Shown here in pieces: positions 16,276 through 62,545 of a stretch of 64,000 bases of DNA; position 1 is the stretch's first letter, and every line of letters begins with the position of its first letter. The notes below the pieces were generated by a model. It worked only from the letters and a program-made list of their open reading frames with translations, was not told where the DNA came from and searched no databases. The stretch covers positions 1,302,001 through 1,366,000 of the forward strand of contig OZ176054.1 of assembly GCA_964247055.1 (NCBI GenBank), given 5' to 3'. The position numbers and the translations under genes were made by a program. This DNA comes from Paragordius varius (taxonomy: Eukaryota > Animalia > Nematomorpha).

Positions 16276-16278
16276 ATT

Positions 16279-24900: not shown

Positions 24901-26168
24901 TGGAAGCCTTATCTCATATTCATTCCAAATATATTTTACATAGAGACATAAAATCTACCAATATCATGATTGATTCCAATGGTACAGTCAAACTCCGTAA
25001 TATATTTAATTAATTGAAAATATATACAACTCTAACCACGACCCCTGGGCCGCATGCGACTCTTAAAATGCTTCTTTGTTACCCTGAACCATATATTAAA
25101 TTTTTTGATATACTTTTTTTAAGTATTAGTATCTGCAGATGCGTCAAGCAGCCATAAAATTTTTATCGGTATTATATGGCGCGTGACCCTTCAAAAATAA
25201 TATTTTTTGCGCACCTTAAATTTTTTGGTGAACACCACTGATATTATAAAAGGCTTAACAAAAATTTGAATATTATAAAATATGCATTTAACTATGATTC
25301 CATAGCAATGTATTATTAACAATGGAACTAAATTTTTTTTATTGTCCACAACAAAAAAATAATTATATAGAAGAATTTACACAATTTTGTTAAATAATAG
25401 TTGATTTTGGACTGGCAAAATTGAGCTACCATCCCTCTGCCAAGATAGTCGGCACACCTTGCTACTTGGCAGAGGAGACCCTTTTTAAGGGTATACAGGA
25501 TCGGAAATCGGATATTTGGGCCCTGGGCATCGTTTGTATTGAGATGGTAGATGGAGAGTTACCCTATGCACATCTCCATCCCAGCCAGGTAATTTTATCA
25601 ATTTTTTTCATAGAGCTGAATTGTAATACAATATGCATTTTAATGGTTGCTTATTTCACACTCTAGTTGGGCAATTTGCAACTCAGTAATGTATGGAAAA
25701 AGGAAAGCAAAAAAAATTATTTATCAACATTTTATTGTTTTTTCAATACACCACTGTTTTGCAAATTCCCCAACTATGCGTGAAATAAGCATCCATTAAA
25801 ATTCATACTGTATCTATGGTTTTTACGGCATAATAAAACATAAAATTAAAATTAGATCATGCATAAGATGATGACTCAAGGCAAACCATTCTGCAACAAG
25901 AGGTGCAGCATTTCCTTTTCAGAATTCATTAACGTCTGCCTGGAGGACCCTCCACTACGTCCACCAGCCTCTGATCTTCTGAAAGTATGTTAATTTTTTA
26001 CATAATCAAACGAAATCTTTTTATGCAATTAAACTCATTTTATATTTGCAATTATTTTTTTAGCATCCTTTTCTCGATTTGGCCGCCTCAAGGGCGTGGC
26101 TCAGCTATATTGTCGCAACAAACAAAGTAAACATATATGGTGATTTTTTACAAAAATATATTAAATAA
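21946..26168 (+). CDS. STE20/PAK-like Ser/Thr kinase paralog 1, about 428 aa, N-terminal Cys cluster, no CRIB domain
   Basis: Hand-built exons, all GT-AG and frame-consistent (1287 nt): 21946-22111, 22193-22282, 22645-22677, 22832-22894, 23010-23057, 23122-23159, 23264-23316, 23388-23571, 23657-23746, 24897-24996, 25401-25588, 25856-25984, 26064-26168. Motifs: [77 protein letters not shown]. The 3' end is uncertain because of a possible extra donor at 26127. Confidence 0.9.
25027..25240. mobile_element. hAT (Charlie-like) MITE remnant in kinase 1 intron 10
   Basis: Right end ggtgaacaccactg (CAGTGGTG-type TIR). Left subterminal ccctgggccgcatgcgactc is typical of Charlie-type elements. The left TIR is degenerate. 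Confidence 0.45.
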
Positions 26169-27083: not shown

Positions 27084-30000
27084 AGTATGTATGAACTTGA
27101 ATTTTTTCATATATTAGAAACAATAAATCAAGGAACACACTAATAGCTATAATCGACAACAATTACAATAAAGTTATGATCAAATCTTGATACAATCTAA
27201 AACCTTAAGGGTTAGAGAAATGAATAAACTTTGCTAATATCAAAAAGTTAAAATATGCAATCATTAGTGTTGGTTTAGCTATAAAACACCAGCTGTGCTT
27301 ATTTGATACAGATCCCATTTTGATTATCATACAGCAAATGACAAACACACCTGGCTGATTTTGACAAAACTAGCCTCTTTTCTTTGATCATCAATTATTA
27401 TATTAAATTTTGTGTCTGAAAAAATAACATTTGCGGCACTCTTTACTATCACTAGAAAAGGTGTATGTTTGGACTAGAAGCTTATGTATGCTCTATCGAT
27501 TAAACATCAAACAAGGATTCGGAATATTGAAAGTTATGATTTCATGGGAAGGAGTGTGACATAAAACGCATAATTTATTCCATACATCATTCAAAAAACC
27601 TGGATAGGCTAGAAGACTAACAGTAAAATAATGTTCCGTCTCACATGGCATTCAAGTTTTATCAGAGCAGGAGCCAAATATGTAGATGCCCATTTGATTA
27701 CCTTTAATTGCATGTCCAAATCATTTTCCAAATAAAATATAAATTTCCAACTATTATTTTTATTTAGATGATTTTAATTTTTCGTTACCCTATTTCAAAC
27801 TCAATAATAGAAAATTCTGATGAAATTTATATATGCCGTTACATTATTTAAAGTGCTCTTGGTAAGAGGCATATAAATAATTTAAGTAAAAAAACACTTT
27901 TGTTTTCACTATATCAAAAAATTGTAAATCGTTTATCTTTATTTCTTGTAATCAGTCATTGAGCCTTATTATAAAGTATCATATGTTTAAAAAACGAAAT
28001 GCTTCCTTCTAACTATTAATAACATTTATAGAAATTAAAAGCTAGTTTGTCCATTGAATTTTATATTTTGGAGTATTCTACGGTTGTTGTCGCCATGTTT
28101 ATAATATAAGCTAAATTAGTATGCTATTATAATTCAAAATATTGTATTTTATTGTATTTAAATAATCGTTTTAATAAAATCCATTTGAGCTTTCCCTTAG
28201 AATATTTGGGGATTTTTTTACATGACAACTATATATTAAAAAAAAATTAATCAATAAATCGATGTAAAAAACCTGGTAAATTTTATGGAAAAAGTTTTCA
28301 CCTATTACCTCGTTTCCAACATACTTCATAATAGGTTATACGTTTCAAAAAATTTGTTAATAAACGTGCTAAACATTATTTGAATGGTTTTATTATATAA
28401 TGTCCAAATAATTTTACTAAAATTTAAGAGCTTATCTACGAATACTCCCGTATATTAATGCACCAAACCAAGCAAAGAAAACACGCTCTACGATGATATT
28501 TTTAATAAGGGTGGAAATGGTTTTCAGTCAACTATAATTTAAAACAATTTCTGTAAACTCGCCAAGTTTTTCCGCTCAGGTAAAATTAGGGTCATGACAT
28601 TTTGTTTAAACGAGTTTTTGAATTCTAAATGATGAATAAATAAGTTAACTAAGTCAAGGTTTAAAAATCACGTGCAAAACAATGAATAACCACCATTAAC
28701 AATTAAAATTCATTCTTGAAATTTTTTAAAATTTCCTCGAACACGAATCATACTTAAGGTAATTTTAAGAAATCATATAAAATATATTTTTGGAATATTT
28801 CAATTGTTATGCTTTATTAATTTTTATGCGTCCTCTTTATCTGTTCAAGAATGCATTTTGATTCGTGATATATCATTCAAAATAGTAGTGAAAACTTAAT
28901 GCATGTTAATATGTTTTACATTTACATCAATAATTAACAATGGACATAGGAAACAAACCCATGAAACAAAAGCCTGATCCTCATTAAATATATTTAACTA
29001 ATCGATGTAAATAGCTCAAACTTTGTGTACAATGATTTAAAAAATATAAAACAAAAAAGTTTTTTTTAAACCAAAAGCTTTTTAATTTATTTTTTTTACT
29101 CATAAATCATAATTATATTAAAATAATTTATATTATTTTTAAATTAGTTTTTTACAATATTTTGAGTTTATTCTGACTATTAAGAGCCATTACATCACAT
29201 TGATTTAAATGACTTACTACCATTTGAAGATTCAATCTTTTGCACTATCTAAAAAATTTTGAGTTTAAAGTTGAATTGGGGCCAAAAAATTTCGATAAAC
29301 ACCAAGAAAAAATTTTGGGTATTAGACCATTTTTTTATACTATTTATGTCCTTCAATGTAATAAATTAAAATGGCACTTAATAGTCAAAGTTGTCTATAT
29401 TTATCGAACTGGCCACTTATTTTATTAATGTTACAACCCGTTGTTTGAAAATAAATAGAATATTTGATTCTATACCATCTTTACACAATTTTGACCAAGT
29501 AATGTTAATTTCAATTTTGGAAAGACATCTGATGTGTGATATTGTCATAAAATTATAAAAATATTATACCGACGCCCATAAATATGTGTCTCAAAAAGAA
29601 TTTATCTGGCTATATGTGATTGTCATACACCTCAGGTGCAAATGTAACACTTTTGTTCATATTCGAATTCATGGCGCAAGTAATGTAACTATAAAATAAT
29701 AGTTTGTTTCCCAAAATACTGTAATAAAGTATCCCTATAATATTAACAAATATTGTTGTCCGGAAAGTGTAAAATCCACAACCAGCTTAAGTAATAATTA
29801 TATTATTAATTTTTGAAAAAAAATCAAGTTAATATTAAATTTTTTTATTTTATATAAGAACTATATATTGAGACCATTATTCAAAATAACTTTACAGGGT
29901 GGTAGTAGAACTATAGCTAATCCATATTTGTACTTTAAGTTCGAATTGGGTCTATACAACCCACACAAAGTTTAAGTTGATATTAAACTAAAACTGTTTA

Positions 30001-30634
30001 AATTTAAGCTTCTATTCTAATTAAAATTTTATATAAATAAGCCAAATTCATAAAGTTTAGATTTAAAATAAGTTTCATATCAAACTAGTTCGATGCTATT
30101 TTTATTTTAGAACATTATATTGAAACATGTATATTTGACTTTAAAATAAATCTATTTTTTTAATTCACAAACATTGATCAAAAGAGAAAAAATAGTTTTT
30201 TCATTACTTTATTTAGTCATTGGACATGTATTGGCTAAATTGTTATGTAGTTCTACGAAATGAGTAATATGAAGTATTTTCTAAATTTTTTTATAATTTG
30301 ATTCATCAATGTTATACTCGTACAAACTTTTCCTATGGTTTCGATTTGTGCCATATTCTTAGAAATATTTAAACAGGCTTGGGATCCCCAAAGACCCAAT
30401 TTGAGTCGGAAGACTGATATTCAGCTATGCTTGAAATTTTAAGAGAATTTACATGGCTGGTTATTTCTTTGTTCATTTTAATGTTTTTATACGCTAAAAG
30501 CGATATCTATATTACATGATAAAATCAGTTACCCTATTAACAGCGCTAAGAATTTATTAATGATTTTGCTCGTTGCCAATTTTAGCTAATTTTGGGAATA
30601 ATTGATAGTTTAGTCTAACTTCTTCTCGATTATG

Positions 30635-33400
30635 GGGATAATAATAATAATTACATTATATGATTCCCTCTTTCGAGCAGTCACACGTAAGCTATTTCGC
30701 CATCTGTCTATGGCGTCATCGTGTTTTAGGTTCAGTTTTGCCATGTCCCTCTTAATTGTTTCTATCCATCGCGTTTTAGGTCGCCCTCTTCCCCTCTTAC
30801 CTTTCACAATATAATAATCAATCTTTTTACCAATGTAATTATTATCTCTTCTTTCTACATGTCCAAACCATCTTAGACGATTTACCATAATCTTGCGTTA
30901 CTGGTTTAATTTTCGTACCTCCAATTATGTAGACATTTCTCTTGTCATTCCTCATTACACCGCACATTAATCTAAGCATTCTCATTGCAGTAACCTCAAC
31001 ACGCTCTGTTCTGATTTCTTTATTGCCCATGTCTGTGAGTTGTACATCATTGTTGGCTATATAACAGCACTGTTAATCTTACCCCTGACTTTTAGGCCAA
31101 TATTTTTATTGCACAATACATTTGAGAACTTTTTATAATTTGCCCAACTATTTCGAATTCTTAAATTTATATCAGTTAAAGAACCATCTGTTGCTAAAAT
31201 CGCTCCTAATGCATTCCTCCAGACTTTTTAATACCCACCCTTCTAAATGCAATTCTCGTTTTTTCCCACCGAAATTTATAAGTTCCGTTTTCTTTTTATT
31301 AACTTTTAAACCGCATCGTAGTAACATATCCCATTTACCCACCAATCCTTGAAATTCATGCAACTCGTCTGACAGCACTATTAGGTCGTCTGCATAAAAA
31401 ATACCAGTATCCATGTTGCCCCATTTTTAAAATTTACTCCATGCATACTATAAGTAGTAACGGACCGATTTTTGACCCCTGATAGGCGGTTTGACTTATT
31501 TCGATAGGATGTGAAACTTCCTGGTATGTTTTAACTTTGGTATGGTGTGACTCGTACATGCTTTTTAGAATTTTATGTAACTTTCAGGAACATTTTTTTG
31601 CCTTAAGCACCACCATATTCTATTCCGTGGTATTCTGTCAAACGCCTTTTCAATACAATTAAAATACCATGCAACTATATGCTTTTCAATTATACTTCTT
31701 ACTGCGTGAATCGGATCAATGGTGGATTTTCCTGGAATAAAACCAAATTGATTACCCTCTATACTAACCATTTTTCTCATTCGTTTCTCTAGTACTTTCT
31801 CAAATAACTTCATTGTATGCCACATCAAACTTATCCCTCTGTAATTATTGCAATCGCTAACACCTTTATCTTTAATAATAAGAAAAGTGCAACCCTTCTT
31901 CCATTCGGTTGGTATCATACCTGTAGTAACTACATTATTAAAAATATCCCTCAAAAATTCAATACCTTTCTCTGAAATTATTTTCAAACAGTATATAATA
32001 ATATGGTCTGGACCTGCAGCGTTATTTATAGACATCTCTTCTAAACCAGCCTGGATTTCTTCTTTTGTTATACTTTCAATATACGCAGATGTATAATCTG
32101 GTGTTTAGGGTTGTCACTGACGCCCAATTCAAGGTCCTCCCCCTTTTCAATGTTTTCGCTTCCTCAACGAGTTATTTTCCCTTTTTATCTTCAATAGCGG
32201 TCGCGTAGAGGGCAGTCCAGCTTTCGTCTGTGTCTTAGTCGAACAATTATATAAACTTTGTTTAGACCTAGCTTACTCTTTAACTCCTCATATAATGATG
32301 CCGTCTTTTCCTTTTTCACCAATCTTACAAGCCTTTAAAGCTCCTTATTAATCCTTTTACATTTTTCCTTGTCTTCCGCATGGTGGGTTAACCTCCACAT
32401 TTTAAAAGCTTTACTTTTCTCTCGCGATTTCAGAATTATTTTTTCGTCTTTCAGCCATGCCTCTCTATAAACCTGATTTTTACCACCTTTCATTCCACAC
32501 ACCTTAACTCCCGCCTCTCTATTGCCACATGAGATTAAACACTTCCGAATCGCGGTTCCTGTCTAGCATGCCTACCGTTTCTACAAATCGTTCTTTACTG
32601 TTTCTTAAGGAATCAAATTTAATCACCTTCGGCGCTATAAACTTATATTTTTTAACTATTATCTGTCATATATTTACACAAAAAATATATTATGTTGTGT
32701 GCTTATCTGCAAGTTAGGTGTGACTTTGCAGTCCACAACAAACTTAAAAACTCCTGCGGTACCAGAATATAATCGATTTGTGACTTCTTATTTCTACTTT
32801 CGTTGGTAGTTAAATAGCTATCCCTTTTAGTAAAAAAGGTGTTTGTTATAGCTAAGTTATAAAATTGAGCAAATTTTAATAAACTAGACCCTTTTTCATT
32901 TATAACCCCGTAACCTTTTCCGCTGTCCTATTTTGTCCCACATGGCCATTGAAATCACCACAAAATATTATTTCTCTGTCTTTCGTTAATGAAGTCTTTC
33001 TGTGTCTAGCAAATTAATTTATCCTTTTCAGGTTTAGTTAACCCTATCTGAAACGCTTTGTAAAAACCCTCTTATTTAACAGGTCGACACTTATAACTCT
33101 ACTGTCAGCACGTCTAACATCAATTACTTGAGTGGCAAATCATGGACACACTATTATGGTGACCCCAGTTATAACCTGAATAAAACATTTTATAGTTACC
33201 ATCTAATGTTTTAGTGCTGTTTCCACGGTATCTGTCCTGAATGCACAAAAAATTACCTTTTTACCCTCATAGTTTCAACTAAATCATATAACTTACTTCT
33301 TAACTCAACATTTATACTGGCAAAACACACTCTGCAACCTTCCGTATCTCTACTGGCCCCTACCTCCGTGTAGCGATTGGCCAGGTCTGGCCTGGACGCC
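30635..33400 (-). mobile_element. Degenerate RTE LINE, copy B (same insertion as 3185-5960)
   Basis: Same position in the unit, same motifs (YADDL, QFGFIPGKS, RLRWFGHV) and largely the same disruptions. Confidence 0.9.
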
Positions 33401-33965
33401 TTACAAAAAAACCTATAAAAATCAAAAATACAATTAATAAGAATAATTATAATGGATAAAATAAACACTAAAACACATACTAACTAATATTTAAATGTAA
33501 CCAAAAAATGAAACCAAAAATTAAACCAAAATAAAATAGATAAATTAATATATCAATAAATAAAAATAAAAAATTACTCATTTATGATATTTTTATTCTA
33601 TGCGTAAAATGATTTTATTTTTTTATTGAAAATACCCAAATTAATTATAATTGACCTCAAAAAATCATGAAGCAAGGGCCTGGTAAAGTGGATTCTAAAC
33701 ATATCATATCTTAGGTTTTATTGTAACAATTTCTCTTAAATTTGGCGAGTCCATTAAATCTATAAAAGGATGTTAGACGTACCTTTTTGAATAATTATTG
33801 CATCAACGCTTTTCTGCTCATTCTAAATATGCCTCAAATAATAAATGTAATCTGTGGAGTTATTATTAGCTTATTGTTAACTATGTATATTTAGGCTAAT
33901 TCCAATCTTTTTAATCTATTGATCAATGATAAAAATTAAAAATTTCGCAACAAAATTGATTATAC

Positions 33966-35176
33966 CTGGATGGATATTGGTGTAGGATGGTTCTCCATCA
34001 ACCATCTCAATGCAAATGATGCGCAGGGTTTTTGCAGGCTCAAAATAATCACCAGCTCCCTCTTGCGGATAAAAAGTACTGTGGTAAACATATAAAAAAA
34101 GAAAATATTTTCTATAATCTACAGTTAAGGGGTTTATAGTGTCGCTTCATTTATTTAATATTAAACTATTTTACCATAATAGTGAAATGGATAATATCGA
34201 ATTATTTAAATTATACTTGAATATTATTAATAAAACCACCCCAGTTTGTTTTATATTTTATTAATATATTTTTTTAATTACCTGATTCATCTATGGGTTG
34301 TTCTTGCTTTGCATCAAGAAATGCGTAACGTAAATTAACATGTAATAAACATCACTTTTTTAAGATTATTTGCCTAAACTATATTAAGGCTATTTTAACA
34401 GATCCTTTAAAATGAATAAAATAAAAAATGCGATTTAAATGAAGTATTTGGTATTGGGTAAATATCTTGTAGGCACAAAAACCGCCATTGTCTTTCTATA
34501 TGAGTGAAAAACTTATACCCAATTAATCTCTAAGTTAAGACTTTTGAGAAAAGATACACCATTTATTCTAAAGTTTTCTTAATTTTTTAAGAATATTTCT
34601 TTATATAATATTTATTGGTTGTGTGTACTTTGTACAAGCATATTTAACACAATTAAACCATTATGGTTATGATGCAAATCTAAATCAAAAATAAAATTCT
34701 TAAAAGCGATGTTTTATAAAAATGGTTTTCTTTTGACATATTACCCATGTTTACAACTAATTTACATGTTTAAACAGCAAAATTTACCAATACCGTAACA
34801 GAAAATGTTTTTTATCTATTTTATAGGTTTATTACCTGGACCGGGACGACGCTTTTTACGGAACACTTTTCTCAAGGTTGCTAACCAGCTCTTCCCATGC
34901 TCCCCGTCAACCTCGCCATCTAAACAATAATTAATCAGCATTAGGATGAATTAAACTTGCACACTTAAAAACAAGCAAGAAATATTTAAAGAATCTTACC
35001 CGGAGGATCCACTCTCCTCTTCCGGAAGAACCCCCACCGTTTCTTCCACTGGGGACAACAGGCCCGATTCCTCCTCTAATCAGCTGTTGTCCCCTCATCA
35101 CTATGATTCCTCCCAATCACTCTTTCTGCTTCTCCTTCAACACGAAAACTACCACAACAACAACACAGCGTTAAAT
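33966..35176 (-). pseudogene. Internally deleted kinase paralog (exons 1-4 fused to the end of exon 11), left arm of fold-back B
   Basis: Minus strand: exon 1 part, intron, exon 2, exon 3 (34282-34314), exon 4 (34028-34090, YHSTFYPQEGAGDYFEPAKT), running directly into [20 protein letters not shown] (33966-34027) and a gtataa donor. The exon 3 and exon 4 acceptors are mutated to TG. Confidence 0.85.
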
Positions 35177-36760
35177 GTGATGAGGGGACGTCAGGGGATT
35201 CTGGAAAGAATCGTAAGGGCTGCTGTGCCAAGTGGAAGAAACGGTGGGGGTTCTTCCTGGAAGAGGAGAGTAGATCCTCCGGGTAAGATTCTTTAAATAT
35301 TTCTTGCTTGTTTTTAAGTGTGCAAGTTTAATTCATTCTAATGCTGATTAATTATTGTTTAGATGGCGAGGAGAATGTCGGGGGTGGCAAGAGCTGGCTG
35401 GGAACTTAAGAAAAGTGTTCCGTAAGAAGCGGCATCCCGGTCTATGTAATAAACCTATAAAATTAATTACAAACACATTGTCTATTACGGTATTGGTAAA
35501 TTTTGCTGTTCAAACATGTAAATTAGTCTTGTAAACATGAGTGTCAGAAAACCTTTCAAAACCCTTTTAAAAAATTTATCTTTGGTTTAGATTTGCTTCA
35601 TAACCATAATTTAATTAAATTGTACAAAGTTACCTTACACAACTAATAAATAGAATGCTAAGAAGAAATATTATTAAAAAATCAAGAAAACTTGTTGATA
35701 AATGGTTTATCATTCAAAAGTTTAGACTTAGAGATAAATTAGATTTTTATGTTTTTCATTCATATAGGAAAGGCGCGTTTGTACCTACATGATTTTTAGC
35801 TAATATCAAATAAATCAAATTAATCTCATTTTTTGTTTAATTCATCCCAACGTTATCTGTTATAAGATAATTTAGCTAAATTGTATTAAAAAAAGATAAT
35901 ATAAGTTTTGCATTGATGTTTATCACAAGTTTATTTACGTTACGCATTTCTAGATGCAAAGCAAGAACAACCCATAGATGAATCAGATAGTTATAAAATT
36001 ATATTAAGAATAAAATATATAACAAACTGGGGTGTTTTTATTAAAGGATATTTCTAACTTAACTAAATATATGAACACTTCGATTCAATTTGGGGTATCT
36101 AAATACCCAAGACTAAATTTGAATTCGGATTTTTTAAAAACTACTGAAAGAAACGGTCCCAATTTAAATTTATGCTTCTATCCTAATAAAAATTATATAG
36201 ATATGCCGAAATATCTAAATAAAATTTTCTTTTGAAAAAAAAGTTCTATGTCAAACTACTTTGACGCCATTTTCATTTTACAAAAATTTTGCAAAATATC
36301 GTCTTCATTTACTTTGAAGGGTAATATTAAAGCAATTTTTTTATTTAAATTACATCTAACATTGATAGAAATAGAAAAAGCGTTATTCCGTTGTATTTTT
36401 CAATTTTACCATTCCACACATGTCACGTTGACGAAATTTCTACCTCTCGGTTTTTAGCCAATAGGTAATATTAAGTATTTTTAAATAAATTTTTTATATA
36501 TTTCAGTTTATTATTATATAAATGCAATATTTTGCTATGGTTTCGATTTCTTCCATATTTTTGAAACAATTTAATTATACAGGCCTGGAGTATTTAACTA
36601 CTCCATAAAAAAGGTTTGATATTAAATAAATTATGCCACACTATTTTTACCACTTCCTTGTAAGCTTTTAAAAAAATAATTTCTCTTTTATTTAGCTTAC
36701 TACAGTATACATATCCGCAAGAGGAGGGCGCTGGTGATTTTTTTGAGCCTGCAAAAACAA
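34028..36760. repeat. Long inverted repeat (fold-back B) with a 140-bp near-perfect core
   Basis: 34911-35050 is the reverse complement of 35231-35371 except for one extra base and two substitutions. Inner loop is 35102-35176. Outer arms include exon 3 and exon 4 homologs on both sides; a roughly 540-bp insertion lies at 36070-36610. Confidence 0.9.
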
Positions 36761-36920
36761 GTAGATTGTAATTATATTGTAATATTTTTTTTTGAAAATT
36801 ATTTCATATATCTAAACAAACAATTTTAAATAAATGAATTTTAGAGTATATTAATTTCATATGTAATAGTAAACAAGATATCGGTTAGCATAACTTCACC
36901 TCAGTTTAATTCCGCTAAAT
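35177..36920 (+). pseudogene. Kinase-paralog 5' fragment (exon 1 part to exon 5 part), right arm of fold-back B
   Basis: Exon 3 homolog at 35954-35986 (donor mutated to AT), exon 4 at 36696-36760, exon 5 broken at ccgctaaa (about 36918) and joined to an inverted exon 2 fragment. Confidence 0.85.
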
Positions 36921-37239
36921 TTACGGAACGCTTTCTTCAAGCTTTCCAACCAGTTACTCCGACGCTCATCCTCACTCTCATCGCCATCTAAACATTAATT
37001 AATCAGCATTAAGATGAATTAAACTTGCATTAAAAGCAAGCAAGAAATTTAAAAGTCTTACCCGGCAGAACACCCACTTTTTTCTTTGGAAGAAACGCCA
37101 GCTTTTCTTTCACTTGGGACAACAGGCCTTCCGATTCCTCCTAGAATCACCTGTTGTCCCCTAATCACCATCATTCCTCCCAATCACTCTCTCCGCTTCC
37201 CCTTCAACACGACAACTACCACAACAACAACACAGCGTT
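36921..37239 (-). pseudogene. Inverted kinase exon 1-intron 1-exon 2 fragment
   Basis: The reverse complement gives TLCCCCGSCRVEGEAERVIGRNDGD, then ccgg/gtaag intron, then tttag/atggcgatgagagtgag...gcgttccgtaaa. Confidence 0.85.
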
Positions 37240-37383
37240 CCCTCATATATGGAGGTTAATAAACAGCGTCTTAGCTTATGCTTATCATCATTATTTTCAA
37301 ACATAATTTTCGGAAACGTTACTTCAGTGTACTTTCCCACAAACCTATTGTGAGGTGAATGGAAAGCTAATCGATGATTACCT
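37240..37383 (+). repeat. About 145-bp segment duplicated at 39502-39650
   Basis: cctcatatatggaggttaataaacagc.tcttagcttatgcttatcatcat...gtgaatggaaagctaatcgatgattacctc occurs at both sites. Confidence 0.75.
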
Positions 37384-37517
37384 CCAAATCTCAAAAGTGT
37401 CTTTTGTAAAATTAATTATTCCAACATATAGGGATTGATTTTAATATTTAGAAACGGTAATTTGATGTTTCTAGAAATTTGAACTGGTGATTTGAAGCAT
37501 AAAAGTGTTTTTATGTT

Positions 37518-38884
37518 ATGAACTTTGAATTTTTAACGCTGTGTTGCTGTTGTTGTAGTAGTTGTCGTGTTGAAGGGGAAGCGGAAAGAGTGTTTGGGAG
37601 AAATGTTGGTGATGAGGGGACGTCAGGGGATTCTGGAAGAATCGCACGGGCTGTTGTGCCAAGTGGAAGAAAAAGTTGAATTTCTTCCGAAAAAAGCAAG
37701 TGGGTGTTCTGCCGGGTAAAACTTTTTAAATTTTTTGCTTGCTTTTAATGCAAGTTTAATTCATCTGTTGCTTAATTAATGTTTAGATGGCGAGGTTAAG
37801 AGTGAGGGTGAGCGTCGGAGTAGCTGTTTGGGAACCTTGAGAAAAGCGTTCCGTAAGCGGCATCCCGATCTAAGTGATAAACCTATAAAATAAATTACAA
37901 ACACATTGTCTATTACGGTATTGGTAAATTTTACTGTTCAAACATGTAAATTAGTCTTGTAAACATGGGTAATATATCAAAAGAAAAATCATTTTACAAA
38001 GCCCTTTTAAAAAATTTATCTTTGGTTTAGATTTGCTTCATAACCATAATTTAATTAAATATGCTTGTACAAAGTTACCTTACACAACTAATAAATAGAA
38101 TGCTAAGAAATATTCTTAAAAAATCAAGAAAACTTGTTGATAAATGGTTTATCATTTCTCAAAAGTTCAAACTTAGAGATTAAATTGAATATTTATGTTT
38201 TTCATTCATATAGGAAGAAAAACGCTTATGTACCTTCATGATTTTTAGCTAATATCAAATAAATCAAATTAATCTCATTTTTTGTTTTATTCATCCCAAC
38301 ATATCTGTTATAAGATAATTTAGCTAAATTGTATTAAAAAAAAGATATTATAAGTTTTGCTATGATGTTTTATCACAAGTTTATTTACGTTACGCATTTC
38401 TAGATGCAAAGCAAGAACAACCCATAGATGAATCAGATAGTTATAAAAAAATTATATTAAGAATAAAATATATAACAAACTGCGGTCTTTTTATTAATAG
38501 ATATTTCTAACTCAACTAAATATATTAATGTAATAAATTCGATATTCTCCATTTCGCCATCATGTTAAAAAGGTTTGATATTAAATAAATTTTGTCACAC
38601 TATTTTCACCATTTCCTTGTAAAATTTTAAAAAATTAATATCTTTTTTAGTTAGTTTACCACAGTACTTTATGTCCGCAAGAGGAGGGCGCTGGTGATTT
38701 TTTTGAGCCCGCAAAAGTAGATTATAATTATATTGTGATATTTTTTGTTTGGCAATTATTTTATACATCTAAACAATTAAATTTAAATAAATCTTGAATT
38801 TTAGAGTATTTTAATTGTAACCTTTATGTAATAGTAAACAAGAAATCGGTTAGCATAGCTTCACCTCAGTTTAACTCCGCTAAT
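37518..38884 (+). pseudogene. Kinase-paralog 5' fragment with intact ATG (exons 1-4, part of 5), frameshifted
   Basis: ATG at 37518 (MNFEFLTLCCCCCSSCRVEGEAER...). A 1-nt deletion near 37638 leads to TGA at 37677-37679. Exon 3 donor is mutated, and there is a break in exon 5 at about 38884. The block 37880-39207 repeats 35450-37239. Confidence 0.85.
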
Positions 38885-39207
38885 TTACGGAACGTTTTCT
38901 TCAAGCTTTCCAACCAGTTACTCCGACGCTCACCCTCACTCTCGCCATCTAAACATTAATTAATCAGCATTAAGATGAATTAAACTTTCATTAAAAGCAA
39001 ACAAGAAATTTAAAAAGTCTTACTCAACGGAACACCCGCTTGCTTCTTTTGGGAGAAATTCAACCTTTTCTTCCACTTGGCACAGCAGCCCTTGTGATTC
39101 CTTCCAGAATCCCCTGACGTCCTCTCCGTCACCATCATTCCTCCCAATCACTCTCTCCGCTTCCCCTTCAACACGACAACTACCACAACAACAACACAGC
39201 GTTAAAA
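38885..39207 (-). pseudogene. Inverted kinase exon 1-intron 1-exon 2 fragment (second copy)
   Basis: Near-duplicate of 36921-37239, ending in the same fold-back junction cacagcgttaaaa/gtgatgagggg as at 7193, 35176 and 60138. Confidence 0.85.
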
Positions 39208-39274
39208 GTGATGAGGGGACGTCAGGGGATTCTGGAAGGAATCGTAATGGCTGCTGTGCCAAGTGGAAGAAAAG
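39065..39274. repeat. Compact hairpin, about 68-bp stem and 75-nt loop
   Basis: 39065-39132 (cttttcttccacttggcacagcagccc...cccctgacgtcctctccgtcac) is complementary to 39208-39274 (gtgatgaggggacgtcagggg...ggctgctgtgccaagtggaagaaaag) with about five differences. Confidence 0.85.
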
Positions 39275-42049
39275 AATTTTTATGACTTGGGTGAGACGGA
39301 ATAGTCAGAAGGTATACTCTCATTTAACCATCTCACTGTAAATTATAAAAATGAACCCGATGCCAACCATATTACATGAAATCAATATGCCTCAATTGAT
39401 ATCTTGGGAATTTGTTTCAACAAAAATTATTTATCAAATTATGGACTGAATTAATTAATAACAAAAAAATATTAAGTAGAACTTCTTAAAAAACCTCTCT
39501 CCTCTCATATATGGAGGTTAATAAACAGCATCTTAGCTTATGCTTATCATCATGCGCTATCCTATTTTCAAACATAATTTTCGGAACTTCAGTGTACTTT
39601 CCCACAAACTTATTGTGATGGTGAATGGAAAGCTAATCGATGATTACCTCATCTGACAAAATCAGTTAAATTTTCTATAGAGTTTATTGATGTATTTTTT
39701 GCTTTTATGCTAAATATTAAAAAAAATTATTTTTTAGATTATCTAAGAGATAATGACCCGAGCCAAGCCGAAAATCCCTACTTGCAGTCAAAGTTTTATA
39801 CGTTTCATCAATCTGTATTTGGGTAACGCTCAAAGCCGTCCCTAAGTATCCAAATTCATAAAAATATGTAATTGCCAAAAATTCTATTATTAAAACAAAC
39901 ATTTGTTGTGTGTTGTAAAGCCCTTCCTCACCGTAGATGCCATAATTAAATTGTCCAACATTCATAGAATTGGACCTCACAAATAATTTAGTTTCTGCCA
40001 AATTTTATATCTATTAATTAACTTTATAATTAGCTTTGCTATTAAATTGTTTCATATATGTAAATAGAACTAATTGTCCAAAACAATATGACACAATATT
40101 ATATTATCTTGTATTTATATGTTTGGATTTTAGTTTTAAATATATCATATAGACAATTTTTAAAAAATATTACTTAGAACAAAGTGAATTCATTGATAAC
40201 TACTATTAATGTTGACTTGACTAACTGAAATATAAAATTTAGTTTAAAAAGGTAAATTTGACTTTCGTAGTCTTTTTAGTAATCAAATATCTTGATTTGT
40301 ATTGAACTTTTTATCAGTATATTACTGTAACCTGGTGTTATTTAGTAATTAAACTATGGACAATAATATTTATTTAATACACTGTCTAAATAAAATATTT
40401 TATTATTATATGTTATAAACTCCCATGAAGATGTTATGTGCACCGCAAAATTATTATAAAGTCATAATTGATTTCATACAACTGTCGAAATGTACCATAG
40501 AAACTGAAGAAAAACAATCTTCTTAAGATATATTATGTATAAAATAAATAAATTTTAAGCGATATCTACAGGTATTTTGAAGTCATGCAATTATATTTAT
40601 AAATATAATTGATTATTCAAAATCAAATACAGACAAATAAATATAATCTCCTCGTATATAAATTGAGTATTGACTTATCTATGATTTCCGCTTTTCTTAT
40701 TAATAATTTAATTAGTATCAGTGCAATGCAACAAATAATATCCTGATTAATTATATTTTGCCTAATAGGAATCTCATGGTGTTTATGGTTTAGCTTTAGG
40801 CTATAGTTCAGGAACAATATTCACACTTTTGTCCTAAATTTCCATATGAAAAAAATCACAAAAATAACTCATCATATGCTATATAAATTTTGCATCATTC
40901 CAAAAACATACATACACATACACTATATTTGAGGCTATATATTTAAATTTTAATTTTTTTTATTTGAGCTCTGAAATTTTTTTTTGACCCCTCTAAAACG
41001 GGCAAGTAAAAATATATGTATATTGCTTAAAAAATTAATTTATTAGAAAAATATTGTTGAAGCGAAATTAGGTAATTTCAAGCATGGTATTTAAAATAAA
41101 AGAACAATAGTTGATAATTTTTTAAAAGATATCTACAATAATAAGAACTGGTGCCTCAAAATATGATGTACGTAAAAATGTAATTAAATACTAATAATCA
41201 ATAAATTTTGTAATTAATAACAAACTATTTTTATAAACTTAAACTTTTACCAAAAATTATATGATTTTAGGCGCTATTCCCACCTATACGCAATTGCCAC
41301 AAAAGTGGAAATAACTTTCTTGAAACTCTCCAAAAAATCATTATGAAAATTTTTGTGCGCACTGTGTGTACATATTTTCTGTGATTTCGTTATCATACAA
41401 GCCATTTAAAATACATATTCTATGGCAATTACTCATAGGACCAAGGTAAAAGATTAAAATTAAAAATTGGTTGTTAGCTCAAGATAAATTTTAATCTTTT
41501 AAAAGACAAAACAATCTTTATTAAATTCTGTTTTGATTAAATTTTTAAAGTGTATTTTATGATTAAAAGTAAATGTAAATAGTAAAAAACATTAAATATT
41601 ATAAAAACACCTCTTCTGCCATTCTTATTCCTCTGAACATATCTGTTCGATCAGATTGGGCAATTTATTGTACAAGACCCTAACCTTACAATCTTTTGCG
41701 GAAACATCGGAAGAATGTTAAATTCCCAAAATAAAATAGTATAAAAATGGTTTAATTAACTGCATAAGATTCGCTAGGTACTATTTTGTCAACCAATAAT
41801 AATGAGTAACAATATGATAATTTTACTGACTACACTTATCGAAGGCAATTCAAGACCTTTAACAATTGACTCCAATTCTTGGCAAGAATCTGTGGATTTC
41901 ATCGAATGCATTGAAGGATATTAAACTATTGATGTTGATTATTAAAAGATTAAGTCTTTTGCATGGGAACATCAGGTACCCATGATGGCCCTATAAAATC
42001 AAGATAAGTTGGCCTATTATTTTTTGTACAAAAATGTAAAAAATAGAAA

Positions 42050-45064: not shown

Positions 45065-46182
45065 CTGATTGTATCCAGTAAAAATGGTTCGATGTCGTAT
45101 CTATGTATGGCCCATAGATACCGTTCAACATGACATTCTCTGGAAGCCCCCTAAACAAATAGGAGTTTCCGATCACTTAATTAAACTAATTAAATCCATA
45201 TACTCCAACTCCTACAATCACTTAACACCCCGCATGGCCCGACCTCTTGGAGTCCAATGAACATAGCTCTGCGTCAAGGCTGCATTTTATCCCCCATGTT
45301 GTTCAACATATATTTGGAATGTATCATGAGGGATCTAAATCTGCCAGGAATAAAAATAGGGGGTCACACTCTGACGACTCTTCACTACGCAGACGACACG
45401 GTTATCTTAGCAAATTCACAAACAAACCTCGAAAACAGTCTCCAAACTTTTATAAATGTATGCAAAAGATACAATCTTACATTAAACCTCAACAAAACTA
45501 AAATATTGCATATAAACTCCCCTCATTCCTATGACTCGCTTCGGATTAATAACGAAACAATTCAAGTAGTCAACGAATACACATACCTTGAAAGCATCAT
45601 AACAACTCAAGCTCCAGTTCTCAAGAAATAAGAAGACGCATAGCTATCGCCAAATGCGCTCTAGTCTCACACTACAAGATATGGAAATCTCATGACATAA
45701 CCCTTAAAACAAAAATCCGACTAATAAACGCATTAATATTTCCTATCATGTTTTACGGATGTGAAAGCTGGACTATCAAAATTGAAGACGAAAAAAAAAT
45801 AAACGCTTTTGAAATGTTTTGCTGGATAAAAATACTTGGTATAACATGGAAGGACAAAATAAAGAACATCGACATTGTAAATAAAATTAACGCATTAACA
45901 ACGCTTCGGGGTAAAATGATAAAACAAAAATTCGGTTACTTTGGACATATTATTCAGGGCAATTCTTTGGAAAAGGATATTAGGTTAGGAAAAGTTAATG
46001 GTAAGAGAGGAAGAGGACGCAGACGTATTCGCTGGTTAGACGAATCTTATCACTTTCCAAATTGTCACTGCAAAAACTATCTCAAAAAGCTCACGACAGA
46101 ACCGAATGGAGGAAGTTTTCCTACAAAATCGCTAATGATCGATAACCGACTACAAGCTCAACAACAACAACAACAACAACTT
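45065..46182 (+). mobile_element. 5'-truncated RTE (BovB-like) LINE
   Basis: LRQGCILSPMLFNIY, LHYADDTVILA, FYGCESWTIK, FGYFGHII..SLEKDIRLGKVNGKRGRGRRRIRWLD, then a (CAA)7 tail at about 46160-46181. Confidence 0.85.
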
Positions 46183-46445
46183 GTAACCAAATACATTTTA
46201 GTTTAAGACATTACTTCATACGTCTAAAATGCAATACCCACCTCTTAAATTATAAACCATTGTAAATTTGGATATATTATATGGTTCATACAGTTAGAAC
46301 TGCATTTTAGTATAAATCAGCCTAATAATCAACATAAAAAATGCATGATATGATACACACTTTTATATAATTTTACAACTTTTTCCCTAAATACTAACAA
46401 GTTGTTTAAATTAGGGTTATTCTTCGTATGTGTGACTTTGTTTAT

Positions 46446-46531: not shown

Positions 46532-49500
46532 ATGAACTTTAAAACATTTTTAACGTTATGTTGTTGTTGTGGGAGTTGTTGTGTGAAAGGGGAAGCCGAA
46601 GGAGTGGTTGGAAGGAAAGATGGGGATGAGAGGACGTTAGCGGGAAGGACCAAGGGCGGTTGTCCCAAAGGGAAGAAAAGGCTAAGTTTCTTCCCAAAGA
46701 AGAAAGGGGATGTTTCGCCGGGTAATTCTAAATATTTATAACATATTTACCTCATCTAACTGCGAATACATTAAAACATGATTAATGTTTAGATGGTGCT
46801 GAAAATTCTGGCGAGCATCGGCGCAGCTGGGTGAAAAGCCTTAAGGAGGTGTTTAGAAAGAAGCGGCATCGCGGTACAGGTGATAATTTGAATAAAACAT
46901 TTTTAACCGTTTTTTACCAAATCATTTTTAAAATTACTATATTCAAATATAGTTTAAGACACCTCTATTAGTTATAACTATTTGGGCGCTTCGATTTTTG
47001 TTTTCACCAAAGCAACAAATCTTAAATCCATAACTTAAGATATTTGCACATGGATGTATTAAGTTACTTTAGATAACTTATGTAGAGTAATATATATTTG
47101 AAATAAAAACGCCTAATAAAGAAAGACAATTTAATGCATAAGTTTTTTCACCTCTCAATTAAGTGTTAACTTTCGATAATGTTTTAAAATTTGCATACAT
47201 TTAAAAACTTTCACTCAACTCTTTTTAGATAATAAACCATTTTTCAGTCACAATTTTCTTCGACTAAACGTAACAAACATTTTTACATCTAAACGCAACA
47301 TGTTTTCAATCAAATAAACATTTTTAATCAAAGACAACTAAAAAAATGTTGAGTGTAGACAGAAAAATGTTGCGTTTGCCGGAAAAAATGTTTCTTTTGG
47401 CTGAAAAATGATATCTTTACACATATGATGTTTTTTAAGATGGTAATTTGCGTTATTTTTAGATGCGAAGCAAGAAAAATCCGAAGATGAATCAGGTCAC
47501 AAATATTTTATATTTTTTAAAGCATATTAAAATTTTACATATTATATATGATCAATAAAATAATTAAAATATTTTGGTTATGTTCCATTTCGCCATTATG
47601 GTTAAAAAGTTTGATTATAAACAAATAATGGGGGACTATTTTGTCACCTAATTGTAAGATAATTATACAAACACATTTTTTTATATAGTCCACAGTATCT
47701 TGTCTCCGCCAGACGCTGGTGATTTCGTTGAGCCTCCAAAAACAAGTATATATTTACGATAATTTTTAAAGCAAAACATAATATAATAGGATAAAATGTA
47801 CTAGTGTCGGAACTCAAAGAGGGATGTTTTCTCAACAAAAAATATAAAATTATATAATTAGTGTGTTGATGGGTCTACTAATTTGCAAGTAAAATCTATT
47901 TAAAACACCCTTTTCCAAGTGGGTCTTAAAAGCCATATCCCTCGATTATTACTTGCACTACGATGATTGATTTCCAAATTTAATAATAAAATATGAATTT
48001 ATTTTTAAAACAGGTTGGGTCCGGTAAAAAGCTAAATAATATTTTAAATAAAAATAAAAAAGACAAAATTCGGCCGGGAATTATTTAGGTCAAAATAATA
48101 TTTAACAAGTAAAAAATCTATTCTTATAAAATAACATTGAGTTAATCCGGATAATAGTTCTATTGCTGAACACACTTTAGACTATGTCACTCAATTATCG
48201 CATATGTACACATAATTTTTGAATTACTTAATTTTAATTTTTTATTACAACTTAACTCCATTTTGAGTTCGGAAACTGTACATTTTATTATTAAAAAGTT
48301 TAATATAAAAAGTAAGGCAAGTTAAAATTTTCGAAGTATATTATAATAATTATAATGGTTTAGTTTTAAATTTGCTTGGAATTAATCTTATAATTCAAGC
48401 AGTTTGTAAATAGTTCTCTATTGGAAAAGCAAAAGCTATTCTTAGCTTTGGCTCCTCTAAAAGTTATTGCCCTGAAAACTCATGTATCAGATATAATTAT
48501 TACAGGAATATTTCTCACAATTTATTAATATCAATATTTTAGCTCCTAATCATGATGCAGTCGATCCACAACAAAAAGAGGTGGGTATGAATTATATGAA
48601 ACTTTAATAGATTTGAATTAATTCGATTTTTGAATTTTATTTTTAGAAAACCATTTAACAATTTTCATATATTATTTTGGCATAATTAAGATTACCAAAG
48701 ACATCCCGTCCAAATTTAATGTTTGCGAAAAACTTGGAGAAGGGTATTAATTTTTTATAAATACTGTTAGAAAAGCATAGTATTACTAAACTATATATTT
48801 ATTATTTAGGGCATATGGATCTGTGTTCTTGGCCAAATATCATAAATCTACGGTAGCATTAAAAAAGATTAAACTTAAGGACAAACAACTTGATGACGAT
48901 ACGATCAATGAAATATTTATACTTAAGAATCTAAAACATCCCAACATTGTCGAATATATTAGCTCCAGTTTTTCGGGTGACAGTTTATGGGTAAGCAGTT
49001 ATTTTTTTTCCTGAATCAAAATTTGAAATATGTGTCTTTCTCTCTTTAGTACTTTGCTTCTTTGATTTTGTACAGATCATTATGGAGAACATCGATGGGG
49101 TTACTTTGTGGGATTTGGCTCGTCGGAAGCTTTGGGAATCTTTAATAGCCCAAATCTGTCATCAGGTTTTTAAATCCTTGTTACATTAGGCAATCAGATT
49201 CTAAATGATCTTTATTTTTCACATTTTTTACATGTTTATTTGAATTAAATATGATGTATGCTGCACTTTAACATTGATGTAAAAGTATTCATACATAGTG
49301 GAAACAAGAATATTCTGCTTAAAAATATTATTTCTGGTAGAAAGAGCAGGGATCTCATGGTGCTTTTTATTTGGACCATATAATTCAACTTAATATGTTC
49401 ACTTATGAATTATTTTTGATACAAATGATTGAATTTTGTTAACATCCCAAAGCAATTTTAGTATCATGCACTATAAAAATTTTAAATTGCTGGATTAAAG

Positions 49501-51203
49501 ATTAAAAATTATTTTAAAAAGCACCGTTTAATTTTATAATGCGTAATTCTTTCATTTTGACCCTTTGCAATTTAAATTTTTAATCATATAAAAACGCATT
49601 TAATGGTTTATTAAAGCATGACTCATTCAAAAGCCTTTATATATGATGTAATAACACCTCTTCTACATAATTGATGCAGAAATCTGTCCTCTGAAATTTT
49701 AATTAGATTTGTTCACCTTCAAAAAGTTAAATATATACTATCTTTCTTATAAAATTAATGTTGATTATACCGTTTCCATCACCATATATGTTTCAAAAAT
49801 TTTACAATATTTGGAAAATATGCTTTTAAATTTTTTAGTATTATAATTTAGTTGTTAAAATTATCACAAAAGAGAGTAAAAGATTTTTCCCGCATCCAAA
49901 AATGTGAGAATTTCGGAGTGGACTATAAATATTGATATATATTATAGTTATTATTTAGCTTTTTAAGTTGAGATAACTTTCATTAATTTTTTATAGAACG
50001 AAGAACTTTTGGTATAATTTTTTATGGGTAATACAATTTAAACCATGAGGATAATACATATTACTATAAGAATATTCTAATTATTTAATTTTTCCCATAA
50101 CTGTGTCTGTTTTACTCTATATTCAATTTTAAACAGCGTTATAATATATTTGAAAGTGTCAATGTAAATTATTACAGTTTTTTCCATATTTTTTTGTCAA
50201 CCCTGTTGTTTATAGATCTTGAAAGCGTTATCATTCATTCATTCCAGAAGTGTTATTCATAGGGATATCAAATCTACCAATATCATGATTGATACCAATG
50301 GCACAGTCAAACTGAGTAATATATTTAAATTTCATAACCCAAAATATTATCAAAGTTATTCAATTTATAGGAAAAAATATTAATAAGCCTTAAATTGAAT
50401 AATCTGTATTATTTAGCCATAAATGTATTATTAGTAAAAAATTGAATTTTTTTGTTGTTCCCATCACATTATCTTTCATACAAAAATTAATCACAAACAT
50501 GTTTCTATATATATATCATAATAGTAGATTTTGGTGTATCCATCTATGATAACAATACCTCTGTCAGGGTGGCAGGCACTGCCTGTTATCTGGCAGAAGA
50601 AACGTATTTTTCAGGACTGATCTCTAATAAAGCTGATATATGGGCCCTGGGCATCATTTGTATTGAAATGGTTTGCGGAGAGCCCCCTTATAAGCATCTC
50701 AATGCTAGCCAGGTGTTAATATTATTGATTTGTTCACATGTGTATTTTATTTTTCTGTGTAAGTTTATTTTTTTAACATCCTTCCTGGCGATAACTTTAT
50801 ATTTGAGATTTCAATAAATTTATTTATATTTGTATACACTTTCGTCGTTACCGCACAAATAATGGATTTTAGAAGCATAATATTTGATCATTGGTAATTT
50901 TTAATTATATGCTAATTAATAACATATATAATTATAATTCTTAGATCAAGCAAACAATGATAGCCCAGGGCAAGCCATGGATTCCGCCCACTAGCCAGGT
51001 TTTCTACGAATTCATAGCTTCTTGCTTGGAGAATGTGGCGAAACGACCGTCCGCCTCTAAACTACTAGGGGTATGTAAATTTATTACAATGCTATTGAAA
51101 TTAATTCATTCATCATTTTTGCAATGTGTTTTAGCATCCTTATCTTGAAATAGCCGCCCCAACAGTATGGCTTGCTAACACTGTGGCAACATATAAGGTA
51201 TGA
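46532..51203 (+). CDS. STE20/PAK-like Ser/Thr kinase paralog 2, about 421 aa, N-terminal Cys cluster, no CRIB domain
   Basis: Exons (1266 nt, same intron positions and phases as paralog 1): 46532-46721, 46793-46879, 47463-47495, 47689-47745, 48430-48483 (weak acceptor, skippable in frame), 48543-48580, 48691-48743, 48810-48990, 49076-49165, 50216-50315, 50525-50712, 50945-51070, 51135-51203. Motifs: [74 protein letters not shown]. Possible extra donor at 51198. Confidence 0.9.
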
Positions 51204-62290: not shown

Positions 62291-62545
62291 GATTATAATT
62301 ATATTGTGATATTTTTTGTTTGGGAATTGTTTTAATATTAAACAATTAAATTTAAATAAATCTTGAATTTTAGAGTATATTTTTAACCTTTATTTAATAG
62401 TAAAAAAGAAATCGGTTAGCATAACTTCATCTCAGTTCGGTTCCGCTAAATCTTGTTGGAACTCATGTAATATATAAAATTACTATATAAATACTTTTTA
62501 CAATTTATTATAAAAATGTCAATATTTTAGCATCCAGTTATCCTT
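60139..62545 (+). pseudogene. Kinase-paralog 5' fragment, right arm of fold-back C (exon 3 deleted)
   Basis: Exon 1 part, exon 2 (from 60322), exon 4 (62228-62285), shortened exon 5, and the same exon 6 breakpoint (catccagttatcc) as 9822-9833. Confidence 0.85.

Follow-up and report, generated by a model that had tools for sequence, protein, structure and literature searches.

Layout of the kinase-fragment cluster and its parent family

Six copies of the 5' part of a kinase gene lie side by side at 33949-39274 of the window (the whole stretch of DNA analysed, 64,000 nucleotides), arranged as a long antisense arm (L1), a long sense arm (R1), a short antisense arm (s1), a spacer, a second long sense arm (R2), a second short antisense arm (s2) and a sense stub (Table 1). 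All six fragments were present in the order and orientation given by the original prediction, and matched one another with BLAST E-values ranging from 1e-43 down to 0. The boundaries it had proposed were reproduced for R1, s2 and the stub, but L1 starts at 33949 and not at 33966, s1 ends at 37241 instead of 37239, and the homology of R2, whose ATG does lie at 37518, begins earlier, at 37492. The arms differ from one another by 11-23%. Introns 1-4 are kept in place in all of them, indicating DNA, rather than mRNA, as the template from which the arms were copied, and an origin as a processed (retro)pseudogene was therefore rejected.

Table 1 Features of the cluster and its downstream flank (positions in the window).
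Feature	Position	Strand	Content
L1, long antisense arm	33949..35176	-	Kinase exons 1-4 and a late-exon piece; exon 1 35175-35000 (from about codon 6), intron 1 34999-34920, exon 2 34919-34836, exon 3 34314-34282, exon 4 34088-34028
R1, long sense arm	35177..36920	+	Starts inside exon 1 at the common palindrome centre; exon 1 35177-35282, intron 1 35283-35362, exon 2 35363-45, exon 3 35954-86, exon 4 36696-761, exon 5 36867-920, broken there
Interspersed repeat, high-copy, 532 bp	36076..36607	.	Inserted in intron 3 of R1
s1, short antisense arm	36921..37241	-	Exon 2, intron 1, exon 1; R sequence type
Spacer, centre of hairpin 2	37242..37491	+	Downstream-flank copy and kinase upstream sequence
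R2, long sense arm	37492..38884	+	Exons 1-5, broken in exon 5 where R1 is
s2, second short antisense arm	38885..39207	-	87% identical to s1
Stub	39208..39274	+	First 66 nt of an R-type arm
Downstream flank segment	39504..39650	+	Duplicated into the spacer (37242-37384)
C-terminal kinase exon remnant, degenerate	39753..39869	+	43% identical over 40 aa, with one in-frame stop

Exon 4 of L1 is joined to part of a late kinase-domain exon (34028-33949, ~80 nt at the end of the arm) and its exon 1 carries an in-frame stop, while the reading frame of R1 is shifted and its intron 3 is interrupted by the interspersed repeat, for which a first-look search returned 3628 candidates genome-wide and which is absent both from R2 and from the paralogous locus described below. 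R2 is the only arm with a complete start of exon 1, its homology running from 27 nt before the ATG, and this exon is open. R2 shows indels relative to the kinase gene frame, and the greater part of the promoter-proximal region that is conserved among the kinase genes is absent upstream of it. The spacer preceding R2 is composite, its first part (37242-37384) being an 88% copy of the downstream flank and the following one (37384-37459) matching the region ~325-390 bp upstream of intact kinase genes, and it is missing from the paralogous locus. The degenerate C-terminal exon further downstream, a weak match (E = 1e-4 against the window), suggests that the R copy used to be a complete gene. Searches of the cluster against Rfam detected no known RNA family at E <= 1.

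Exon-by-exon searches identified the source of the fragments as a STE20/MST3/PAK-like kinase, with Pkinase as the Pfam match of the kinase exons and STK24/MST4/PAK as their best PDB matches (exons were searched singly; the one join made, of exons 1 and 2, served to print reading frames). The genome holds nine full kinase genes. Eight of them lie on chromosome C5, together with the cluster, where they alternate with six fold-backs, and the ninth is an intact, solitary gene on contig C3. The window spans three tandem units with one fold-back in each, and extra short arms occur in only two of the six fold-backs. Those of the simple type (fold-backs A and C) keep an R arm unbroken through exon 5, indicating that the junction between exon 5 and the inverted exon 2 is a derived one. 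Exons 1-2, the segment re-copied in the cluster, are the most divergent part of otherwise near-identical kinase genes. Protein-level positive selection as the cause of this divergence was rejected for exon 2, since pS (0.39) exceeds pN (0.16) and is ten times the divergence of introns. Such a pS between genes whose introns differ by 2-4%, together with an abrupt identity tract at ~38600 (see below), indicates that the kinase family is a gene-conversion mosaic.

Shared junctions and putative origin

A paralogous locus lies 280 kb away, at C5:1.62 Mb, in inverted orientation and collinear with the cluster including its flanks. The junctions of the cluster recur in this second locus at 4-20% divergence, and the breakpoint joining exon 5 to the inverted exon 2 is identical at 36920/1 (where R1 meets s1), at 38884/5 and twice in the paralogous locus. 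Both junctions in the cluster are thus one copied junction and not, as had been predicted, the product of repeated new inversions, whereas the predicted internal duplication of about 2 kb was borne out by a module repeated 2.2 times, each repeat ending at the exon 5/inverted exon 2 join. CCGCT and TCTT are found in both source sequences around this breakpoint, and the product is one base off a clean join. The centre junction at 35176/35177, which is also that of the stub, is common to the paralogous locus and was seen in five other fold-backs in all. Direct copies of the module are 86-87% alike in the cluster and nearly identical, and so recent, in the paralogous locus, with 2.2 copies at each. 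From ~38600 the cluster is 95-100% identical to the paralogous locus, s2 being 98-99% identical to its short arms, and this tract adjoins sequence that is 70-90% identical; because identity shifts so abruptly along the locus, simple orthology dating of the tandem copies was dropped. The short arms belong to the R sequence type, and the L arms group with the intact genes next to them.

We consider that the cluster is probably a nest of non-functional STE20-like kinase fragments, generated at the DNA level in a heavily recombining and gene-converting tandem array. The first three steps of its proposed origin are suggested by the common junctions and the identity patterns. An old head-to-head kinase duplication would have produced a fold-back of L (-) and R (+) arms with an asymmetric centre inside exon 1, and amplification of this kinase and fold-back unit (~25-30 kb) would have yielded the six fold-backs and the eight kinase genes of C5. 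Then, in a common ancestor with the locus at C5:1.62 Mb, exon 5 of an R arm may have been joined to an inverted exon 2, through a template switch of the fold-back type or through a tandem duplication that included the palindrome centre. Since the short (-) arm and the L arm form direct repeats flanking R, unequal crossing-over could easily copy the module of R plus short arm (~1.6-2 kb), leading to 2.2 copies at both loci; the R type of the short arms fits one inversion, or a centre-spanning duplication, followed by such module copying. R1 would have received its repeat, and the second centre its spacer, at a later stage. Gene conversion presumably replaced L-arm sequence with that of the intact kinase genes nearby, local arm-to-arm conversion giving rise to the near-perfect ~140 bp core of L1:R1, and a recent exchange with the paralogous locus may account for the sequence from ~38600 rightwards. 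It should be considered that simple unequal crossing-over leaves the spacer and the full 5' end of R2 unexplained, and that the order of events, blurred by conversion-smeared identity patterns, is not secure. Other observations sit uneasily with a nest of debris: each round of unit amplification left the fold-back beside kinase genes, two loci still have the multi-hairpin layout, an ATG and part of the upstream sequence are retained in R2, and the exon frames of the paralogous R-type arms are still open.

Predicted folding and the hairpin-RNA alternative

The cluster might instead be, or recently have been, a hairpin RNA (hpRNA) locus, whose transcript would be diced into endo-siRNAs acting on the amplified kinase family through its mRNA or, via the conserved intron 1, its nascent pre-mRNA, with more arm pairs providing a higher dose; we regard this as unlikely. 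In its favour, any transcript crossing the cluster would fold into long and stable hairpins. The three predicted local stems were recovered, hairpins 1-3 folding at z = -32.6, -39.6 and -13.0 versus dinucleotide shuffles, and the computed fold of the whole 5.3 kb kept L1:R1 (298 pairs), s1:R2 (288) and s2:stub (76) while adding a long-range L1:R2 stem of 597 pairs, an alternative pairing of the kind that had been anticipated. The core of L1:R1 includes perfect runs of 64, 34 and 27 bp. Against it, outside this core and leaving aside the stub, which pairs with 39065-39126 in s2 (62 nt, 94% complementary), the arm pairs are just 76-89% complementary, and despite this the RNA stems look continuous via G:U pairs. 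Moreover, the fold energies of the plus and minus strands differ by <=5%, so that neither strand folds clearly better and this comparison gave no sign of strand-specific RNA-level selection. Intron 1 was also considered as a mirtron-like hairpin and rejected, its fold being no better than that of shuffles (z = 0.25 to 1.6).

Sequence runs shared with intact genes and the evolution of the stems argue in the same direction. In an exact-run search of the nine intact kinase genes, siRNA-length perfect complementarity to kinase mRNAs did not emerge as a property of the arms: s1, s2 and the stub share no exact run of at least 20 nt with any of them, R1/R2 yielded a single match (25-26 nt, in exon 4), and the runs of 22-32 nt in L1/R1 lie in intron 1. 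Relative to the paralogue, the s1/R2 stem has accumulated 50 lineage-specific changes against 3 co-varying sites and the s2/R2 stem 30 against 0, so these stems are eroding by unpaired changes and, apart from a local homogenisation of L1/R1, compensatory evolution was not seen. When arm-to-arm likeness was set against orthology, L1/R1 gave 22 against 4 sites relative to the paralogous pair, and the s/R stems 3 against 3 and 0 against 12; similarly, the arms of fold-backs A, C and F were not more alike within a locus than between loci. Taken together, the co-variation, strand-asymmetry and exact-match tests lean towards instability driven by palindromes or repeats, which the original prediction had offered as its own alternative. 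The stop, the frameshifts, the unpaired stem changes and the near-equal strand folds appear to be signs of neutral decay, and no pairing kept by selection or aimed at present kinase mRNAs is apparent at the sequence level, where the evidence leans against a working hairpin-RNA suppressor.

Further points favour the hpRNA reading: the arms come from the 5' exons of a family of genes co-amplified and strictly alternating with the fold-backs, the L arms track the neighbouring intact genes, the re-copied exons 1-2 are the most divergent part of these genes, and genes for at least one Dicer and two Piwi-domain proteins are present in the genome. The layout also resembles the D. simulans hp-tHMG cluster, in which 13 tandem hpRNAs are interleaved with paralogues in ~27 kb (PMC10317233). 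Like this locus and the Nmy/Tmy loci directed at the Dox family (PMC10317233, PMC10292708, bioRxiv 10.1101/2021.08.05.454923), the array combines inverted repeats made of coding-gene-family pieces, tandem multiplication, interleaved full and truncated paralogues and a fast turnover of copy number. However, the defining features of the Drosophila loci are siRNAs that depend on Dicer-2 and a primary transcript, whereas the hairpins of the present cluster are predicted from its DNA sequence; and the arms of those loci are near-perfect, with siRNAs fully complementary to the targets, in contrast to the mostly 76-89% complementarity and almost complete lack of exonic matches of >=20 nt found here. 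The missing promoter-proximal region upstream of R2 and the equal copy number (2.2) of both loci also speak against this reading, as does the excess of synonymous divergence in exon 2 over intron divergence, a pattern suggesting old variants introduced by conversion rather than escape mutations. Elsewhere, endo-siRNAs from structured precursors dominate the small RNAs of Mnemiopsis, which has no miRNAs (PMC6211395).

Should the hairpins be transcribed and diced, hpRNA-type control of amplified gene families would extend to another lineage. It is more doubtful still that the whole kinase/fold-back array constitutes a conflict system between hairpin RNAs and target genes, with the cluster as its most elaborate member. 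If it did, the hypervariable kinase exons 1-2 and the re-copying of the same segment would be the two sides of an arms race, the siRNAs from the fold-backs could be aimed at the unusually conserved intron 1 in nascent transcripts, and the system would be the first of its kind outside flies and plants.

Other explanations and related rearrangements

Palindromes are a known class of assembly artefact, and the alternating structure could in principle derive from long reads that were chimeric or folded back, or from haplotypes that had been collapsed or duplicated. Artefactual palindromes, however, are near-identical, and here the 11-23% divergence between arms is accompanied by different indels, a repeat insertion and a spacer. 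The recurrence of the diverged junctions in the second locus, and of the centre in five other fold-backs, makes an artefact very improbable, and this explanation was rejected. A transposable element, Foldback-like or gene-capturing, that carried the kinase fragments and built the hairpins is scarcely more credible. LINE fragments abound in the region, which also contains the high-copy repeat of 530 bp, but this repeat lies inside one arm only, is absent from the paralogue and is a later insertion. Transposon-like ends were looked for at the cluster borders and, as with Rfam matches, none were seen. A genome search found the fragment copies confined to the C5 kinase array and not dispersed, C3 adding only its one intact gene, and gene order and introns are preserved in the arms, as is native upstream sequence in R2; transposon capture was rejected on the confinement of the copies and the one-arm insertion of the repeat. 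It is likewise highly improbable that a short N-terminal peptide, with a Cys cluster and a basic patch, is still produced from the sense arms and acts as a kinase decoy or regulator. R2 has an ATG and an open exon 1, and the paralogous R-type exons are open and stop-free, but R1 and L1 are disrupted by frameshifts and a stop, indels relative to the gene frame occur in R2, and the peptide matches no Pfam family.

The preferred reading, a DNA-level nest of fragments, brings the cluster close to two classes of rearrangement. Template-switch events, such as duplication-inverted triplication-duplication and fold-back inverted duplications, are known from human genetics, and they share with the cluster a direct duplicate with an inverted part-copy inside it, a nearby older inverted repeat and short similarity at the junction. 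Unlike them, the cluster is old, fixed and diverged, lies in an invertebrate gene array, was apparently multiplied by unequal crossing-over and shows imperfect microhomology at its junction. On this reading it would be a clear case from nature of a single inverted duplication in a tandem gene array seeding further rearrangement: a short inverted copy beyond a long arm creates direct repeats with the opposite arm, so that hairpin modules can multiply without selection, while gene conversion turns the array into a mosaic that misleads simple dating. Arm-to-arm gene conversion is also known from the ampliconic palindromes of mammalian sex chromosomes. The cluster resembles these in its head-to-head copies around a short spacer and in the local homogenisation of its arms (the 22 against 4 sites of L1/R1), but its arms are short (1-2 kb), consist of truncated pseudogenes and are mostly not homogenised (77% overall).

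Layout and predicted folding of the cluster

The cluster (fold-back B) is best read as a nest of gene fragments duplicated both in inverted orientation and in tandem within a recombining array, a known kind of structure, and its interest comes from its context, the array of kinase genes and fold-backs. The fragment order and orientation claimed in the original prediction were borne out when window positions 33000-40000 were scanned for repeats and aligned with themselves, gaps allowed, and each fragment was placed exon by exon along the intact gene at 21946-26129 (see table). Introns are kept in every fragment, indicating that the copies were made from DNA. The parent gene encodes a protein kinase (Pfam Pkinase at positions 12-67, 107-139 and 139-201 in an exon-by-exon search) whose nearest solved structures are STK24/MST3, MST4, STK25 and the PAKs. 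The duplicated part, exons 1-2, encodes a basic, Cys-rich N-terminus, for which the Pfam search by exon found no matching family.

The three local hairpins, formed by L1:R1 (34911-35371), s1:R2 (36921-37856) and s2:stub (39065-39274), had predicted RNA folds much more stable than those of shuffled sequence (z values of -32.6, -39.6 and -13.0). In the computed fold of the whole 5.3 kb RNA, all three local stems persisted and an extra long-range stem formed between the long arms L1 and R2. Two more small palindromes (76% and 72% arms) were found in the window, one of them within a kinase 1 intron.

Features of the cluster and of the surrounding window (window positions)
Feature	Position	Strand	Content
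L1, long antisense arm	33949-35176	-	exons 1-4; exon 4 fused with part of a late kinase exon
R1, long sense arm	35177-36920	+	exon 1 to a break within exon 5
s1, short arm	36921-37241	-	exon 2, intron 1, exon 1
Spacer	37242-37491	+	downstream-flank copy and upstream kinase sequence
R2, long sense arm	37492-38884	+	exon 1 (ATG at 37518) to an exon 5 break identical to that of R1
s2, short arm	38885-39207	-	as s1 (exon 2, intron 1, exon 1)
Stub	39208-39274	+	first 66 nt of an R-type arm
Intron 1 copies in the cluster (examples)	34920-34999, 35283-35362, 37716-37786		
Fold-back A	6298-7480		remaining R arm at 9279-9833
Fold-back B			the cluster under study
Fold-back C	58954-60430 and 62215-62542		
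K2	46532-51200		intact kinase gene
Broken non-LTR reverse-transcriptase ORFs	30610-32035, 4213-4581, 45257-46206	-, -, +	
Small palindromes	25626-25813, 15940-16648		
Interspersed repeat (~530 bp)	36076-36607		also at 2542-2924, 29997-30382, 55323-55436

The kinase and fold-back array

The window comprises three tandem units of 25-27 kb, each containing a fold-back derived from the 5' part of the kinase gene, and two of the three carry an intact kinase gene (K1, K2) 12-15 kb downstream. Remains of non-LTR reverse-transcriptase ORFs make up a large share of each unit, and the ~530-bp interspersed repeat has thousands of genomic copies (85-90% identity), in some of which the first ~80 nt recur inverted at the opposite end. 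A search of the whole genome (110,561,105 bases, 44 sequences) found nine intact kinase paralogues, eight on the contig of the window (C5) and one alone on contig C3, and the eight strictly alternate with six fold-back loci in three blocks. These blocks lie at 1.116-1.181, 1.296-1.365 and 1.608-1.637 Mb, in opposite orientations; the ninth gene (C3:12.396 Mb) is without a fold-back. Since the pairing of a long antisense (L) with a long sense (R) arm is present at all six loci, it would be older than the amplification of the units. Extra short arms were found only in B and in its paralogue E (C5:1,620,500-1,624,000), while A, C and the two loci near 1.13 and 1.16 Mb each consist of one L-R pair, with an R arm that continues unbroken through exon 5. 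The latter two are 99.9% identical to one another, and in them a ~835 bp spacer between the arms (L031 2995-3830; L032 2924-3759) replaces the shared centre junction.

An assembly artefact was rejected as the source of the alternating arms, which in B differ by 11-23% and have private indels. Moreover, R1 alone holds a 532-bp high-copy repeat (36076-36607), a spacer is also present, and E, when reverse-complemented, aligns collinearly with B and its flanks and has the same order of arms. E repeats both the breakpoint of B between exon 5 and inverted exon 2 (twice) and its centre junction, where ...CAGCGTTAAA meets GTGATGAGG..., which is common to B, E and fold-backs A and C.

Comparison of K1 with its paralogue at 1.18 Mb (L017) revealed introns differing by 2-4% and an exon 2 (22193-22282) differing by 22%, with pS = 0.39 and pN = 0.16. 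Several old exon-2 variants have been shuffled among genes and arms, the N-terminus of the family thus being a conversion mosaic. Intron 1 (22112-22192 in K1) was 92-100% identical in nearly all K1-type genes and in all arm types, compared to 70-94% for the exons flanking it and 52-94% for the remaining introns of those arms. A conversion hot spot or a functional element could explain this. Identity between B and E is 70-90% as far as ~38600, where it jumps abruptly to 95-100% until at least 41000, the high-identity tract extending into the non-kinase flank. The 38600-41000 tract seems to reflect a recent exchange between these two loci, 280 kb apart. The array as a whole is thus a conversion mosaic, which makes dating from a single tree unsafe.

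Origin of the short arms and modules

The junction of exon 5 with exon 2 would derive from one event, common to B and E, and would then have been copied inside each locus. The structural reading of the original prediction is therefore largely right, but the repeated new inversions that it invoked are replaced by one junction, copied. Both sequences flanking this junction contain CCGCT and TCTT and would fit, if not cleanly, a switch guided by microhomology. In sequence, the short arms belong with the R type and differ from the present-day L type; either an R-type copy was inverted, or a tandem duplication crossed the centre before the L arms were overwritten, both routes fitting this pattern. 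In the tree, the L arms cluster with neighbouring intact genes, A_L, B1_L, F_L and G_L falling with the K1 type and E1_L with the K2 type (support 100/99).

A short (-) arm beyond R would form, together with L, direct repeats flanking R, between which unequal crossing-over could duplicate or delete the module consisting of R and a short arm. The two modules of B are 86-87% alike; those of E (L030, C5:1617001-1626000) are identical across ~1.26 kb, a sign that duplication or conversion was very recent there. Intron 2 is 94% identical between R1 and R2, and 88% between either of them and E. Module identity and the intron 2 pattern together indicate that copying or homogenisation probably took place separately in B and E. 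The full exon 1 start of R2, its upstream remnant and the spacer do not follow from simple unequal crossing-over. The weak trace of a C-terminal kinase exon found at 39753-39869 may mean that R was a whole gene in the past.

The hairpin-RNA reading

The likeness to hairpin RNA (hpRNA) loci noted in the original prediction has its closest described counterpart in the tandem hpRNAs of Drosophila simulans, where hp-tHMG comprises 13 hairpins in ~27 kb, interleaved with amplified paralogues (PMC10317233). The ctenophore Mnemiopsis lacks miRNAs, its small RNAs being mostly endo-siRNAs, and its unique endo-siRNA clusters show secondary structure, like those of Drosophila (PMC6211395). The genome studied here encodes Dicer (at least one locus) and Piwi-domain genes (at least two loci), both counts being lower bounds from a six-frame scan, and a hypothetical transcript spanning an arm pair of B would probably be diced.

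That B may itself be a hairpin-RNA locus is nevertheless mildly disfavoured by its sequence. When compared to the paralogous pair, the s1/R2 stem showed 50 lineage-specific differences, 3 arm-covarying sites and 3 following orthology, the corresponding values for s2/R2 being 30, 0 and 12. Arm-to-arm homogenisation was detected only in L1/R1 (22 vs 4 sites), and would account for their ~140 bp core, in which the arms match without interruption over 64, 34 and 27 bp. Folding of B revealed no strand asymmetry of note. No exact runs of at least 20 nt were found between s1, s2 or the stub and any of the nine intact genes; R1 and R2 share with intact genes one run of 25-26 nt, within exon 4, and the L1/R1 exact runs of 22-32 nt with intact genes are in intron 1. 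Upstream, R2 retains 27 nt before the ATG and a distal piece, the proximal region common to K1 and K2 being mostly missing. There were no matches to Rfam families in B, and a fold test found no structure of its own in intron 1. Taken together, the stem, strand, targeting, promoter and other RNA tests lean towards neutral decay of the cluster.
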